The translations under genes and the position numbers were made by a program. Shown here one piece after another: positions 14,230-54,136 of a stretch of DNA of 64,000 nucleotides; the first letter of the stretch is position 1, and every line of letters starts with the position of its first letter. Under the pieces are notes generated by a model. It was not told the DNA's origin, did not search any database, and saw only the letters and a list, made by a program, of their open reading frames with translations. The DNA lies in IMG/VR virus record IMGVR_UViG_3300050120_000230, positions 248,001-312,000 of that record; one strand, given 5' to 3'.

Positions 14230-14529
14230 TCAGGAGACGGCCAGTTTCAAGGCGATCACGTCGTTCTTGTAGAGTTCGAAGTCACCGTAGAACGCGATGC
14301 TGTCTTTGCCACGAGGCAACCATCGAACCTGCCAAGTCCAAGTCGTGTGCGTGATCGGGTCGTCGGGCAAGAAACGCATCAAGTTCTTCGTGAACTCGTC
14401 GCCGTAGTATCGTTCTTTATTCGCCCACAGCCGGATGCCCAAAATGGTGATAGGCATCCCGACGCTACTCATGAACGGGTCCACATAATAGTGGATTTCG
14501 TCGAGCGTTCGCCGATCCAAGAAATCCAT
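14230..14529 (-). CDS. GD..F..D-x-x-x-K[LM] subfamily protein
   Basis: FYGDFELYKNDVIALKL. Confidence 0.6.
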   Translation of the reverse strand: MDFLDRRTLDEIHYYVDPFMSSVGMPITILGIRLWANKERYYGDEFTKNLMRFLPDDPITHTTWTWQVRWLPRGKDSIAFYGDFELYKNDVIALKLAVS

Positions 14530-15068
14530 CAGCGCGACTTGAGGCGCTCGACGATCTTGTAGTGGGTCTGGACGATTCGGCTCAACGTTTCATCATCGGT
14601 CAGCTTGCGGAACGAACGAGCATGGTAATCCTCATCTGGGATCACCGCTGTCAGAAACGCCATGATGTCGGCGGGTGTGTCAGGGTGTGAGGCGATCACG
14701 TTGAAGCGATCCACTGCCAATTGTTCCCCAAGATGGAACACAGCCGCGCAGGAGGACAGGTCCACAATGACCTTGTCCATCTCCGACCAGTAAATGCTTT
14801 CGGGCTGTTCGTCTTCGGTCGATAGGCCGCGTTTGTTCAGCAGTTCGACCAGCAGATCGCTGTGCCTCAGTTCATCGAAGGCGGTAGCCCGGAGCACGGT
14901 CTCGGCCGCGATATTTCCACCGGCCCATTGCTCGATGGCCGAGAGATTGTCGGCGTAGCCGCTGTATTCGGTCTTCTGAAGTTTTTGCAGCCAGCGCGCC
15001 ATGCGCTCTTCGTCAGCGAGGTTTCGTTCCCACCAGCGGAGGGCGAAGTCTGTGTCGAACTTTTCCAT
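14529..15068 (-). CDS. Ferritin-like diiron protein
   Basis: Repeated E...DExxH pattern: DELRH, GEQLA, DEDYH. Confidence 0.75.
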   Translation of the reverse strand: MEKFDTDFALRWWERNLADEERMARWLQKLQKTEYSGYADNLSAIEQWAGGNIAAETVLRATAFDELRHSDLLVELLNKRGLSTEDEQPESIYWSEMDKVIVDLSSCAAVFHLGEQLAVDRFNVIASHPDTPADIMAFLTAVIPDEDYHARSFRKLTDDETLSRIVQTHYKIVERLKSR

Positions 15069-15099
15069 AGGCTCAATCTGCAAAATTAAGCCGAAGTCG

Positions 15100-15684
15100 T
15101 CAACCAGTTTGGAACCGCGTCCGGGTAGAGCCCCATCCATCTCTGTCAGGAGCGTAAGGATCGACGATCACGAACTGATCGCCACGCTTCATGATGTTAC
15201 CCGAGTTCAAGTCCACCCAGCAGCCACCTTTCTGCGAATGAAGTTCCTGCAACGTATCTAGAAATAGTTGTTGCTCGGGCGAGAAATCCCATTGCTCGAA
15301 ATCAGCCTGTGGCTTGGAAGCAATGGACACCAACGTGTGCAGTCCGGCCGCTCTCTGCTCTTCAGAAGTGGTCTCTGACAACCGCTCGATGCGGATCATC
15401 CGCGCTTTTTCATTCAGTCGCACACCGTTGCCCCTGAACCGAGGCAAACAGGGATTGTTCCGGTGGGCTTTGCAGAATGAAATGAAACGGTCGTAGCATT
15501 CGTCATTGTAGACTTTGACGACTTCGTTGACGCGCGGGTTTTCGAAGACGAGACTAAACTCGCCACCACTGAGCATCGAGAAACCGAGGGTCTCCATGTA
15601 ATCTTCCAACTGTTCGACCGTCTCGATAGGACGAGAGGTGTGGACCTTAGCCCCGGCCAGTTCGAAAATCTCGTGAGAGCGCAT
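15100..15684 (-). CDS. Protein kinase-fold protein (T7 gp0.7-like) with capsid-targeting-like N-terminus
   Basis: SGGEFSLVF, VVKV, DLNSGNIM, IVDP; MRSHEIFE; CTAAATA upstream. Confidence 0.7.
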   Translation of the reverse strand: MRSHEIFELAGAKVHTSRPIETVEQLEDYMETLGFSMLSGGEFSLVFENPRVNEVVKVYNDECYDRFISFCKAHRNNPCLPRFRGNGVRLNEKARMIRIERLSETTSEEQRAAGLHTLVSIASKPQADFEQWDFSPEQQLFLDTLQELHSQKGGCWVDLNSGNIMKRGDQFVIVDPYAPDRDGWGSTRTRFQTG

Positions 15685-15691
15685 CCCCTAT

Positions 15692-15964
15692 TTAGGAGAG
15701 GAACATCTTCAGAATGGTCAAGTCATGCTGCATACGGTCAAGGTCGCCGTTCTGTCTGACTATCCCGCTTGGATTCCACTCCATGCTCCACACGCGGCCG
15801 ACCTGTCCATCGTCGTAGCGCATCAGGAACCAGTGCGTCTTACCCTGATGCGACGCTGAGCAGGCCCACATGACGATACCTTCAAGCTTGGCCTCGCCAC
15901 CCGCCGACAGTTCTCGCAGATTCTTCCACGCGACCTTGGCGGTCTCTAGTTGAGACTCGCTCAC
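15692..15964 (-). CDS. GD..F..D subfamily protein
   Basis: NGDLDRMQHDLTILKMF. Confidence 0.6.
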   Translation of the reverse strand: MSESQLETAKVAWKNLRELSAGGEAKLEGIVMWACSASHQGKTHWFLMRYDDGQVGRVWSMEWNPSGIVRQNGDLDRMQHDLTILKMFLS

Positions 15965-16260
15965 GTCCGGCCCGTGAATTCTTCGTTGAACCTTTCAGGC
16001 GGAACGGTGCTCCACCGAGTCCCCCACCGGCCATCGCGGGTGACTTGGAACATCGTTGGGAGTTTCACGAATTCCTCGAACAATTGCCACTTCATATCCG
16101 TTCGATCTTGCCCTCGGAAACGCTCGTCATCTGTCGTCAGGATCGTGGTGACGTATTCGAGCGTGCATCCTAGATGCCGGTGAACACCGCTCATCTTGGC
16201 CATAAGCTCGGCCTTCTCGATCACGAGAACGGCCGCCGCGAGCGTTTCCGGTTCGAGCAT
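15961..16260 (-). CDS. Hypothetical protein
   Basis: Overlapping gene run. Confidence 0.5.
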   Translation of the reverse strand: MLEPETLAAAVLVIEKAELMAKMSGVHRHLGCTLEYVTTILTTDDERFRGQDRTDMKWQLFEEFVKLPTMFQVTRDGRWGTRWSTVPPERFNEEFTGRT

Positions 16261-16695
16261 TCAGGCAACCGTGACGAACGTCAAGCCGGGTTCGTTCGCG
16301 AACTCGGCGTAGTCGTGCAGGTAACCGTCCGTGACGACGATGGCCTTGTCGGCGCCGGAAGCGCGGAAGTCGGCGACGATCTTGTAGAGCATCGACGGGC
16401 CGTCGCACCGATCAAACAGCGTTTCGATCTTGCTGTGGCGGAAGTAGCCAATCGTGCGAACGTCGTAGCTGAAAGTCTTCAGCACAGCGAACGGCTTGTT
16501 GATCGTCTGAAGCTTCTGGATCATCTTCGTCCGAACAGAATCGACGCTGATGCTTCCCGATGTATCGACGTAGATGGTGGTCTTCTGACCAAGCGTCGCG
16601 GCGATGAAGAGCACGGCGAACGTGAGCACCAGAAGAATGACGACGCAAGAAATGGTCATCGTGAGTTGGGGATGGGCGGATGCAAAAGCGATCAT
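16261..16695 (-). CDS. Membrane-anchored truncated vWA-domain protein
   Basis: N-terminal TM; YVDTSGSIS (MIDAS DxSxS), VVTDGY. Confidence 0.65.
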   Translation of the reverse strand: MIAFASAHPQLTMTISCVVILLVLTFAVLFIAATLGQKTTIYVDTSGSISVDSVRTKMIQKLQTINKPFAVLKTFSYDVRTIGYFRHSKIETLFDRCDGPSMLYKIVADFRASGADKAIVVTDGYLHDYAEFANEPGLTFVTVA

Positions 16696-16710
16696 GTGTG
16701 CGTCTCCTGT

Positions 16711-16962
16711 TCAGAGGTTGGGTTCGGCGCGGACGATGTCCATCAGTTCGCGCATCCGGGTCGGGTTGTTGAGTTGCACCCGCTTGCCGCCGGACTTCAC
16801 GTAGAAGTCCACGCCGTTGGCGTTCTTTTCCCGAGCGAACTTGGCCCGGTTCCGAAGCAGATGGAGGTAGGCGGACTCGATGTCGCCGAAACTGTCGGAA
16901 TGCTCATTGTGGGTGAGACCATCCGTGCCGCCGTAGCTGAAATATGCCGCGAAAGTCGCCAT
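16711..16962 (-). CDS. Hypothetical protein
   Basis: Follows early promoter TTGACG-N16-TACTCT (minus strand, near 17000-17025). Confidence 0.55.
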   Translation of the reverse strand: MATFAAYFSYGGTDGLTHNEHSDSFGDIESAYLHLLRNRAKFAREKNANGVDFYVKSGGKRVQLNNPTRMRELMDIVRAEPNL

Positions 16963-17027
16963 GGAATGTGCCTCCGACAGTTGAACTTACCATCAGAGTA
17001 ACATTGAACCGGAACTCGTCAACAATA

Positions 17028-17372: not shown

Positions 17373-17440
17373 GCTGTAGCCCAAATATGGGCTAAAATCG
17401 AAAAGTCACCCATTTTAGGGCGACAACAAAGGAACGTATC

Positions 17441-18139
17441 ATGAAAAGGATTCTGGAAATCCGCTCCGCTGAAGGCGGCGCCGATTCTCAACTGTTCGTC
17501 CGCGATCTCTCGGACGCCTATCTTCGCCTGTTCGCCCGCAAGGGTTGAAAGTCCCGCGTCGTAAGGGAACGCCCATCTGACGCGGGCATAAGCGAGATCG
17601 CCTTCGAAATCGAAGGCAAGGGTCTCGAACCTCTCAAAAATGAAATCGGCGGACACCGCATTCAGCGTGTCCCTCCCACCGAAAGGCGCGGCCGTGTCCA
17701 CACGAGCACCGTGACCGTTGCTGTCATGGATGCGGATGTTACGATGCTGTCCACCTTTTCGGCGCGGGGGGCTGGCGATTTCCGAATCGAATGGTTTTCC
17801 GGTTCGGGAGCAGGAGGCCAGCACCGTAACAAACATCAGAACTCATGTCGGGTGCATCATGTTCCCAGCGGCATGTCCGAAGCCCGCCAAGGTCGCAAGC
17901 GCGAGGCAAACCTCAAAGATGCTATGGATGGTTTGACCAAGGCGCTCGACGCCGCTCAGCGAGGTGAACTCGGTGCGGTTGTCTCGACGGAACGCAAGGG
18001 TCAAGTCGGAAGTGGTATGCGAGGCGATAAGACCGTGACTATTCGTTTCCAAGACGATAAAGTCGCGCACCACATGACCGGCAAGACGATGTCCGCGACC
18101 CGCTACATGAAAGGGTTCATGGACGAGGTTTGGAGCTAA
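17441..18139 (+). CDS. prfA-like: RF1-like peptide chain release factor (lacks domain 1) with in-frame UGA at codon 36
   Basis: MKRILEIRSAEGG...FARKG*KSR...GGHRIQRVPPTERRGRVHTSTVTVAV...GAGGQHRNK; TGA at 17546-17548; the ORF track reports only 17711-18139. Confidence 0.85.
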
Positions 18140-19427: not shown

Positions 19428-20036
19428 GTGCGTATTTTTCAACTCTTCGAGGCGGCGAGTTTGCCCATGGACCCGGAATCTCGGTTCCGCCGGGCCGAAG
19501 AGCTTGGTTTCACCGTCAAAGCGTTCCATGGCACCGGAGCAGACTTCCATTCGTTCTCGCTGGCCAAAGGTAAGCCTGCGCGCGGTGGTGGCTACGCCCC
19601 GATGTTCTCGAACGTCCCCGGCGAGGCTGGCGGCTACGCCAACAAGATCAAGGGTCATGTTCTTCCCGTTCTGCTGAGAATGCAGCGGCCGATGGAAATC
19701 AGTCACCTCAAGAAACCCGGCATGGACAAGCTGCTCGCCGGTGTCCCTTCACGATGGGATGACGGCGCCAAGAGTACCCGAGACGTGATGGATTCGGTGT
19801 GGAAATACTGGTTCGACAAACTGGGTGACCAAAAGAAAGCATGGACCGAAGTGTATCGCCACTTCGCCGCGCTGGGATACGACAGTTTCGTGTTCGCCGA
19901 CATCGAGCGCGACTATCCCGATGGCGCCACGGATTCGTTGCACACGAAGTTCGTCATCTTCGATCCAAAAAATGTTCGTTCGATTTTTGCGGCATTCGAT
20001 CCCAGCAAGGCGAACTCCGCGAACCTGCTGGCTTAG
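19428..20036 (+). CDS. ART-PolyVal-like ADP-ribosyltransferase domain protein with capsid-targeting-like N-terminus
   Basis: MRIFQLFEA; AFHGT..F..F...MFS...A.GYA...VLPVLL...GYDS...IFDPKNVRSIFAAFDP. Confidence 0.65.
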   Translation: MRIFQLFEAASLPMDPESRFRRAEELGFTVKAFHGTGADFHSFSLAKGKPARGGGYAPMFSNVPGEAGGYANKIKGHVLPVLLRMQRPMEISHLKKPGMDKLLAGVPSRWDDGAKSTRDVMDSVWKYWFDKLGDQKKAWTEVYRHFAALGYDSFVFADIERDYPDGATDSLHTKFVIFDPKNVRSIFAAFDPSKANSANLLA

Positions 20037-49072: not shown

Positions 49073-49148
49073 GGAGCGGTAGCTCAGTGGTAGCAGCGCC
49101 GGTTTGTCAGGCCGAAGGTCGCGGGTTCGATCCCCGTCCGCTTCGCCA
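49073..49148 (+). tRNA. tRNA-Asp(GTC), encoded CCA
   Basis: GGAGCGG/CCGCTTC; loop TT-GTC-AG. Confidence 0.9.
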
Positions 49149-49173
49149 TTTCATTTGAAGCTAGGTGATTTGA

Positions 49174-49245
49174 GCGGCTGTAGCTCAGTGGTAGAGCATC
49201 TCGTTGCCAACGAGAATGTCGCGGGTTCGAATCCCGCCAGCCGCT
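49174..49245 (+). tRNA. tRNA-Gly(GCC), no encoded CCA, flanked by a 13-bp inverted repeat
   Basis: GCGGCTG/CAGCCGC, U73; TCTCG-TTGCCAA-CGAGA. Confidence 0.9.
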
Positions 49246-49281
49246 CAAATCACCTAGAAGGCAATCCTCCGAGACCTTTAC

Positions 49282-49355
49282 GGAGCGTTCGACTATGGGT
49301 AAGTCATCACCCTTTCAAGGTGAGGTAGCGGGTTCGAGCCCCGCACGCTCTACCA
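49282..49355 (+). tRNA. tRNA-Glu(TTC), encoded CCA
   Basis: TCACC-CTTTCAA-GGTGA. Confidence 0.9.
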
Positions 49356-49357
49356 AT

Positions 49358-49431
49358 GGACCGTTCGTCTATGGGTAGGACACCACGTTCTCAGCGTGGG
49401 GGAAGGGGTTCAAGCCCCCTACGGTCTACCA
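49358..49431 (+). tRNA. tRNA-Glu(CTC), encoded CCA
   Basis: CCACG-TTCTCAG-CGTGG. Confidence 0.9.
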
Positions 49432-49468
49432 ATCTCAGCTTCGGTTGAGACGATCTTTGAAACTATAT

Positions 49469-49540
49469 GCGGGCGTAACTCAGCGGTAGAGTGTCAGCCT
49501 TCCAAGCTGTTCGTCGCAGGTTCGATCCCTGTCGCCCGCT
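49469..49540 (+). tRNA. tRNA-Gly(TCC), no encoded CCA
   Basis: GCGGGCG/CGCCCGC, U73; TCAGC-CTTCCAA-GCTGT. Confidence 0.9.
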
Positions 49541-49549
49541 CACTTTCAT

Positions 49550-49621
49550 GCAATCTTCGTCTATCGGCTAAGACGCCTTGCTTTCCGGCAGGAAAGAGCA
49601 GTTCGATTCTGCTAGGTTGCT
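49550..49621 (+). tRNA. Atypical tRNA-Gly-like gene with non-canonical (6- or 8-nt) anticodon loop
   Basis: GCAATCT/AGGTTGC plus U73; T arm AGCAG-TTCGATT-CTGCT; CTTGC-TTTCCG-GCAGG. Confidence 0.6.
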
Positions 49622-52198: not shown

Positions 52199-54136
52199 AT
52201 GACCGAACCCTACGATCACGCGACCGTCGAGCAGAAATGGCGCCAGTTCTGGGCGAAATCACGCCTGTTCGATCAGGCGCTCGCAAGCCGGACGAAGACG
52301 AAATACTACGTGCTGGAAATGTTCCCGTATCCCTCGGGTCGCATCCACATGGGGCATGTCCGCAACTACGCCATCGGCGACGTGCTGGCGCGCTACAAGC
52401 GCAGCCAAGGCTTCAACGTGCTTCATCCCATGGGCTGGGACGGCTTCGGCCTGCCCGCTGAGAACGCGGCCATTGAAAATGGCACGCACCCTGCGGACTG
52501 GACGTTCGCCAACATCGCCGCCATGCGTGAGCAATTGAAGCGTCTGGGCTTGTCCGTGGACTGGACGCGCGAAATCGCGACTTGTGACCCGGCGTACTAC
52601 GGTGAGCAGCAAAAACTCTTCCTGCGGCTGCTGTCCGCTGGTCTCGCCTATCGCAAAGAAAGCGAAGTCAACTGGGACACCGTGGACAACACTGTGCTGG
52701 CCAACGAACAGGTCATCGACGGTAAGGGCTGGCGCTCGGGTGCACCTGTCGAGAAGCGGATGCTGACCCAGTGGTTCTTCCGAATCACCAACTACGCCGA
52801 TGAACTGCTGGACGGTTTGAAGACCCTGTCGAACTGGCCGGAGAAGGTCAAGACGATGCAGCAAAACTGGATCGGCAAGGACGAAGACGGCAACACGATG
52901 CTGCGCGACTGGGGCGTGTCTCGGCAGCGGTATTGGGGTTGCCCGATCCCGGTGATCCATTGCACCGAGTGCGGCATCGTCCCGGCCGAAACGCCGGTGA
53001 TCCTGCCAAAAGATGTGGACTTCACAATCCCCGGCAACCCGCTGGCCAACCATCCGACGTGGAAACACGTCGCGTGCCCGACGTGCGGCGAGGATGCGAC
53101 GCGTGAGACCGACACCATGGACACGTTCGTGGACTCGTCGTGGTATTTCGCCCGCTTCGTCAGCGCCGACCCCGCGAACCCGATCTGCGATGCGGGCATC
53201 GATCATTGGATGCCGGTCGATCAATATGTCGGTGGTATCGAACACGCCATCCTGCATCTGCTGTATGCCCGGTTCTTCACCAAAGCGTTGCGCGACACGG
53301 GCTGTTGGCGAGTGGACGAACCATTCACCGGGCTGTTCACGCAAGGCATGGTCACGCACAAGACCTATCGAACCGTGATCGGCAAGGAATGGGTCTACCC
53401 GGAAGAAGTGACCCTCAACAGCGACGGCGTCACGGCCAAGATGACCGCCACCGGACTTCACGTCGAAATCGGCGCGGCCGAGAAGATGTCGAAGAGCAAG
53501 AAAAACGTCGTCAGTCCTGACGCGATCTTCGACAAGTATGGCGTCGATGCCGCCCGCCTGTTCGTGCTGTCAGACAGCCCGCCGGAGCGCGATTTCGTGT
53601 GGTCCGAAGCTGGTGTCAAAGGCGCCGCAGGATTCATCCAGAAAGTCTGGAACGTCATCAACGAACCCGATGGCGTGCCGGACCAAACCAACATCATCCT
53701 GACCCACCAGACGATCAAGGACGTGACCGATTGTCTGGACAACTTCAAGTTCAACAAAGCGGTCAGTCTCCTGCATGTTTTCGTAGCCGGGATCACCGGT
53801 AAGGCCGACGTGGCGACCAAGAAAATTCTGATCCAACTGATCTCGCCGATGACGCCACATCTGGCCGAAGAGGCATGGCACGATCTCAAGGGTTGCTACT
53901 CCATCGTGGATGAACCGTGGCCGACGTTCAATCCCGCTCTGTTGGTGCCGCCGAACGTCACCATGCCGGTGTCGGTGAACGGCAAGCGCCGCAGCGAGAT
54001 CGTTGTCCCGCTGGATCACGCCGACGACTTGGTCATCGCCATTGCGACGGCTGATCCCGAAGTCATGCGCTTCATCGGCGATGGTGTGAAGAAAGCCATC
54101 GTCGTCAAGAACCGCATCGTAAATCTGGTGGTGTGA
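52199..54136 (+). CDS. leuS: Leucyl-tRNA synthetase lacking the CP1 editing domain
   Basis: [89 protein letters not shown]. Confidence 0.97.

Follow-up and report, generated by a model that had tools for sequence, protein, structure and literature searches.

Can a full-length release factor be made from a phage gene whose reading frame is interrupted by a stop codon? This question was raised by a gene in a 64,000-nt stretch of DNA (hereafter the window), which covers positions 248,001 to 312,000 of the 415,409-bp IMG/VR contig IMGVR_UViG_3300050120_000230, a huge phage. A sequence-only reading of the window had noted an RF1-like frame broken by a single TGA at the conserved Trp codon, and proposed that programmed readthrough makes synthesis of the factor dependent on RF2 shortage or inhibition. 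We examined the anatomy of the gene, the conservation of the TGA among related genes, the genetic code of the phage, the context of the stop codon and the relationship of the family to known recoded release-factor genes.

Organization of the RF1-like gene

The observation was confirmed. The plus-strand frame opening at ATG 17441 runs to TAA 18137–18139 and contains only one internal stop, TGA at 17546–17548, with EIRSAEGG encoded before it and HRIQRVPPTE..GRVHTS and GGQ encoded after it. The mechanical ORF list gives only GTG 17711–18139 (142 aa), and the 5′ 270 nt are missed, as the sequence-only reading had also stated. The features of the locus are as follows:

17431–17435 (+), Shine–Dalgarno-like AAGGA, with 5 nt between it and the start codon
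17441–17545 (+), ORF part 1, 35 codons, encoding a beta strand and the helix with the GGxD tip of RF1 domain 2
17546–17548 (+), in-frame UGA at the conserved Trp codon (codon 36), the proposed readthrough site, in the context GGT TGA A
17549–18136 (+), ORF part 2, 196 codons, encoding the rest of domain 2 and then domains 3 and 4 of RF1
17553–17586 (+), predicted hairpin with a 9-bp outer stem, starting 4 nt after the stop codon, a candidate readthrough stimulator
17600–17617 (+), second small predicted hairpin, with weaker support
17672–17680 (+), PPT tripeptide (residues 78–80), the PxT codon-recognition motif of RF1
17813–17821 (+), GGQ motif (residues 125–127) of peptidyl-tRNA hydrolysis
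18137–18139 (+), true terminator, TAA

To identify the product, we compared both pieces with Pfam and NCBIfam profiles. Pfam gave PCRF and RF-1 domains, and the prfA profiles matched the 196-aa C piece at 1e-36 to 1e-39. On the RF1 profile NF001859, the 35-aa N piece matched positions 107–136 and the C piece positions 147–334, collinearly and without an indel, placing the TGA at profile position 139. In the alignment of P0001 (a homologue with 71 % identity) with Thermotoga maritima RF1, ‘RKGW’ falls onto ‘RKGW’, and the canonical RF1 genes among the fetched loci (L numbers) that show this stretch, such as L124, L132, L139, L144, L150, L153, L155 and L156, all have W there. The AlphaFold (AF2) model of P0001 (pLDDT 89) superposed on ribosome-bound RF1 with a TM of 0.84–0.87. 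In contrast, nothing corresponding to the N-terminal domain 1 (about 105 residues) is encoded: the protein starts at RF1 position about 107–112, and upstream lie only a 116-nt intergenic stretch and a divergent minus-strand ORF. The scores on the prfA equivalog (NF001859/TIGR00019), 134 + 23 bits, were below the cut-off of 400. The gene is a paralogue of RF1, not prfA, and its product would consist of RF1 domains 2–4.

Genetic code of the phage

One explanation for an in-frame TGA is genome-wide reassignment of UGA to Trp (code 4), or a late code switch as in recoded gut phages. P0001 had been called as a 233-aa protein with W by a pipeline that used code 4, although the codon in its DNA is TGA, and TGA-recoded phages that carry RF1 are known (bioRxiv 10.1101/2021.08.26.457843). 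The window has 55 % GC. A crude comparison of ORF lengths by stop codon was uninformative, because TGA is the commonest off-frame stop at this GC content, and we therefore analysed stop usage and coding potential. Genes of the window with the typical codon-position GC pattern end in TGA, often overlapping the next start as ATGA or GTGA. A class-I aminoacyl-tRNA synthetase gene of the Ile/Leu/Val/Met type (52199–54136, plus strand, 645 aa), near the tRNA cluster at 49073–49541, is intact and ends in TGA. The coding-potential scan found no other gene in the window convincingly interrupted by TGA, although it did not flag the RF gene either, the first part of which is short. Its two hits came from three minus-strand ORFs at 15961–16962, which lie in one frame and are separated only by TGA (16261–16263 and 16711–16713) with coding-like sequence on both sides; as an ATG follows at once or after 15 nt, they are probably just adjacent genes. 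The 275-aa plus-strand ORF at 16174–17001 looks like their antisense shadow.

No tRNA with anticodon UCA was found among the seven tRNA-like genes of the window, nor in 60 related loci. We also checked, as a possible UGA suppressor, the tRNA-like cloverleaf at 49550–49621 (plus strand) at the end of the tRNA cluster, which ARAGORN calls ‘tRNA-???’ and which gave no Rfam hit. Its acceptor, D and T arms fold, but a 6-bp stem with a 4-nt loop replaces the anticodon arm, and it has neither a UCA anticodon nor a normal anticodon loop. Neighbour families in related phages likewise end in TGA, for example 43 of 57 in one family. These results contradict a code change, which we regard as very unlikely.

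Conservation of the internal TGA

To test whether the TGA is an error or a mark of a pseudogene, as the sequence-only reading had allowed, we collected related genes. A tblastn search of the GenBank ‘phages’ collection gave only distant RF1 hits (≤39 % identity) and no annotated close relative. A protein search with the C piece returned 4936 hits, and most of the best ones are 140–195 aa rather than about 232 aa, indicating that other pipelines truncate these genes too. For example, the chromosomal copy in Jiella sp. LLJ827 (L081; protein P0099) is named ‘peptide chain release factor-like protein’ by NCBI and is annotated as only 167 aa starting from an internal Met, so that the TGA-interrupted 5′ part is missed.

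We fetched DNA for 80 viral and 80 genomic loci. In all 86 loci where the N piece is recognizable in the same frame, the codon is TGA; the other Trp codons of these genes are TGG (189 codons), and 11 of these genes end in TGA. After further pattern scans, the set held 146 distinct genes, of which 139 have exactly one internal stop, always TGA, and 135 have it at the Trp column. Among these 135, the terminator is TAA in 120, TGA in 14 and TAG in 1. The seven uninterrupted genes are three canonical RF1 genes, three Myxococcales genes with Tyr at the site, and one phage gene with a true TGG (L161). Scans of the whole viral collection with a family-specific pattern gave at least 120 hits ending in TGA, two ending in TGG and none ending in TAA or TAG. 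The two TGG genes, L164:9670–9838 (−) and L165:2664–2830 (+), carry an in-frame TGA followed by C four codons further on, and L137 (a betaproteobacterial MAG) has its TGA 14 codons later. Selection therefore keeps an early UGA as such, not merely one mutated codon.

Synonymous sites are saturated across the family (pS about 0.8), and the presence of the same TGA in 135 of 146 such genes is far beyond chance. Both flanks are nevertheless under purifying selection, with dN/dS of 0.14 upstream and 0.20 downstream of the TGA. Although a single TGG-to-TGA transition would produce such an interruption in one sequence, the same codon in 135 distinct genes from independent samples refutes a sequencing error or pseudogene. 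The two conditions set beforehand as refuting, that homologues have TGG or that the downstream half shows relaxed selection, were not fulfilled.

Context of the stop codon and predicted RNA structure

The two parts of the gene lie in one frame, so that passage of the stop would be readthrough and not frameshifting. The first in-frame start after the TGA is scattered from 4 to 157 codons downstream and no start codon is conserved, which argues against a split gene or re-initiation after the stop. The context of the stop is biased: the preceding codon is a Gly codon, GGY, in 95 % of genes, and the following base is A in 77 %, G in 13 %, C in 10 % and U in 0 %. An A after a UGA favours its reading.

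RNAalifold on a mixed 41-sequence MAFFT alignment predicted no consensus structure, and structure appeared only after splitting the sequences by linker length. Folding energy along the genes dips most strongly in windows starting 0 to 21 nt from the TGA. For the gene in the window, the 90-nt stretch has a fold z-score of −3.4. In its subclade of 14 sequences, the first helix has 76.8 % of cells paired, with 5 of 8 pairs changed on both sides, and the second has 63 %; the covariation score for both hairpins together is 0.298, against at most 0.18 for slid controls. In the largest subclade, a longer helix starts 7 nt after the stop, with double changes twice as frequent as in shuffles. We consider this structural evidence moderate, because the helices differ between subclades, only 61–77 % of cells are paired, and relatedness inflates such scores.

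A hairpin after a UGA would also be expected of a bacterial SECIS element. However, uninterrupted relatives have Trp or Tyr at the site, never Cys, the stop can sit at a Val/Leu position, and an Rfam scan at the gathering threshold, without a direct comparison of the hairpin with SECIS models, gave no match. Selenocysteine insertion, like a two-piece protein made by re-initiation, appears very unlikely.

A sister clade with a prfB-like cassette

In 53 genomic loci, mostly of Myxococcota (within L094–L160, for example L100, L108 and L151), the N part ends in CTT TGA (38 loci) or CTT TAG (15 loci) and the C part continues in the +1 frame. GGAGG lies three bases upstream of the CTT in about half of them (26 loci), and the base after the stop is C or G. 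This is the prfB cassette, and its CTT codon aligns with the Trp/UGA column. In a tree rooted on canonical RF1, the short factors form one group (support 100), which splits into a frameshift clade and a readthrough clade (support 99), with occasional switches between the two modes and at least nine UGA/UAG switches. UAA is used in neither clade (139 and 53 genes). These observations indicate that recoding at a stop read by a single release factor is a family trait. The sequence-only reading had missed this clade, as well as its UAG stops, which show that RF2 sensing cannot be the whole logic of the family.

Predicted function and gene neighbourhood

In the readthrough clade, PPT is kept in 131 of 139 genes, GGQ in 138 of 139 and GGxD in 139 of 139. 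The PxT motif, the Gln three residues before it and the Thr of the GRVHT stretch are of the RF1 type, which predicts recognition of UAA/UAG. We therefore expect, from motifs alone, that the factor would act at stop codons with RF1-like specificity and, without domain 1, probably without RF3. In related phages, the gene commonly lies within large tRNA arrays next to phage tmRNA genes (L039, L058, L178, L182, L192, L200, L201, L228 and others), with an IF1-like ORF at L057:2428–2643, a PTH2 gene near P0064 (another protein of the search) and a tRNA with anticodon CUA at L228:4784–4859. This setting suggests a role in keeping termination or ribosome rescue going during infection.

The sequence-only reading had likened the protein to the rescue factor PrfH, but this is a resemblance only. 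The PrfH profile (TIGR03072) scored 36.7 bits against a cut-off of 166.65, and none of the ten ORFs scanned against Pfam around the gene hit an RNA-ligase (RtcB) family. Near the gene in the window are an ADP-ribosyltransferase of the ART-PolyVal family (19428–20036, plus strand) 1.3 kb downstream, and a Ser/Thr-kinase-like ORF (15100–15684, minus strand) and a rubrerythrin-like ORF (14529–15140, minus strand) upstream. Neighbourhood clustering found no partner gene shared by the whole family: the most widespread neighbour families in related phage loci look, from sequence motifs only, like a phosphatase, a small ORF and a metallophosphoesterase, none of which is in the window, and the frameshift clade has no conserved neighbour.

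Interpretation and regulatory logic

Taken together, the most likely explanation, in which we have fairly good confidence, is programmed UGA readthrough. In this view, most ribosomes terminate at codon 36, while a fraction decode the UGA, most probably with near-cognate Trp-tRNA(CCA), which would restore the ancestral Trp, and go on to make the 232-residue factor. The GGY codon in the P site, the A (never U) after the stop and the hairpin starting 4–7 nt downstream probably favour this event. UGA readthrough in Escherichia coli is set by competition between Trp-tRNA and RF2, and rises with tRNA-Trp (PMC10570021). As Trp is also the residue at this site in the uninterrupted phage gene L161 and in canonical RF1, its insertion by near-cognate tRNA-Trp is the most economical inference. 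Because UGA is cleared only by RF2, output would be kept low and should rise when RF2 activity falls or tRNA-Trp supply rises. Our analysis establishes the interruption, its conservation, selection on both sides of it, the standard use of TGA as a stop elsewhere, and RF1 motifs with a predicted RF1 fold; that readthrough occurs, that Trp is inserted, that yield depends on RF2 and tRNA-Trp, and that the product releases peptides at UAA/UAG are inferred from sequence, in the absence of expression, proteomic or reporter data. The interpretation in the sequence-only reading was thus partly supported: the selected TGA, the RF1-type motifs and the lack of domain 1 held, whereas dependence on RF2 shortage remains an inference from the established competition, and a fixed attenuator or dependence on phage tRNA-Trp fits that point equally well.

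As a fixed attenuator, the UGA would only throttle synthesis of a factor harmful in excess (an RF without domain 1) to a few per cent of initiations. Overexpressed RF2 without its frameshift is toxic (PMC12421855), the stop can move by 4 or 14 codons and still be kept, suggesting that what matters is a leaky stop early in the gene, and either stop codon serves in the sister clade. However, a weak Shine–Dalgarno sequence or promoter would do the same more cheaply, and the absence of UAA, together with the exclusive use of TGA in the readthrough clade, points to a stop read by a single RF, which is inherently responsive to that RF. On balance we consider this alternative unlikely.

Alternatively, the UGA may be decoded by a phage-encoded tRNA, a tRNA-Trp variant or a suppressor, so that the factor appears only once the tRNA set of the phage is expressed. 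Besides the tRNA arrays, 12 tRNA-Trp(CCA) genes lie near the short RF gene in phages, and five of these (L235:1970–2043, L240:8305–8381, L164:2587–2661, L241:11336–11410 and L167:11706–11779) have, by a positional test only, a non-pairing 27:43 position that would give a 4-bp anticodon stem, a feature reported to enhance UGA reading (PMC13092985). In contrast, the 64-kb window has no tRNA-Trp, although a tRNA that decodes UGA cannot be excluded in the rest of the 415-kb genome. In addition, chromosomal copies exist in bacteria (Jiella, Pararhizobium, Rhodovibrio and Gemmobacter), and as many phage genes end in TGA, an efficient suppressor would be costly. This possibility also appears unlikely.

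A broader reading, about as likely as not, is that a large, undescribed family of short RF1 paralogues exists, comprising thousands of database proteins mostly mis-called as truncated ORFs, whose synthesis is gated by termination efficiency at a single codon: by in-frame UGA readthrough in phages and some alphaproteobacteria, and by a prfB-like +1 frameshift at CUU-UGA or CUU-UAG in Myxococcota and others. The phage form would then be the first natural case of the readthrough-type control that was proposed for bacterial release-factor genes before they were sequenced, and a cross-factor circuit in which RF2 activity and tRNA-Trp supply set the level of an RF1-like factor during infection. It would give a natural, compact UGA readthrough cassette for bacteria, and it makes the question of whether phages monitor or exploit host RF2 activity directly testable. 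The family points to a termination or rescue factor that phages carry together with tRNAs and tmRNA. The systematic truncation of these genes by gene callers is an annotation error that can be corrected.

Comparison with known systems

A 2016 review states that in-frame readthrough control is unknown for RF2 and RF1 genes (PMC5009743), and a 2025 survey found no programmed frameshift in prfA and no TAG in the prfB cassette (PMC12421855); the present family fills both gaps of that survey. Papers on huge phages and recoded phages mention phage RF1 and RF2 without this feature, and we found no description of the family in a literature search that did not cover most subscription journals. Programmed readthrough and recoding control of release-factor genes are each already known; what appears to be new is the inferred in-frame UGA readthrough in an RF1-type gene.

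In the prfB (RF2) autoregulatory +1 frameshift at CUU UGA C, an early stop (codon 26 there, codon 36 here) in a class-I release-factor gene must likewise be recoded, so that output depends on termination efficiency, and the sister clade has the same cassette. In the window, however, both parts are in the same frame, the codon before the stop is GGT, and the factor is RF1-type, lacks domain 1 and by motif should not read UGA, so that the site is not self-sensing as in prfB. The sister clade also uses UAG, which is never seen in prfB (PMC12421855).

The RF1 genes of TGA-recoded phages (the ‘code change module’, bioRxiv 10.1101/2021.08.26.457843) also lie near tRNAs and aminoacyl-tRNA synthetases. 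Those modules are reported as written in standard code in phages whose late genes are TGA-recoded, whereas here TGA is used as a stop and, in the window, only the RF gene convincingly carries an in-frame TGA. PrfH (RFH), of the RtcB2–PrfH ribosome repair/rescue module (PMC1586002; bioRxiv 10.1101/2025.01.09.632186), is a class-I RF homologue also without domain 1, but it differs in profile and neighbourhood as described above; here the RF1 codon-reading motif is conserved, and prfH is not known to be recoded.

In phage Qbeta, the A1 protein is made by UGA readthrough by normal Trp-tRNA in competition with RF2; context effects on UGA reading are reported by Engelberg-Kulka 1981 (cited in PMC10570021). 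Qbeta adds a C-terminal extension to a complete protein, whereas here the stop lies near the 5′ end and nothing functional is expected without readthrough. The closest analogue is the eRF1 gene of Mimivirus/Megavirus (PMC3521657), a virus-encoded termination factor whose synthesis needs recoding at internal stop codons, including a UGA readthrough. That factor is of the eukaryotic/archaeal type, in a virus of amoebae, with readthrough plus frameshift in one gene, while the factor described here is of the bacterial RF1 type, with a single inferred event, in phages and bacteria.
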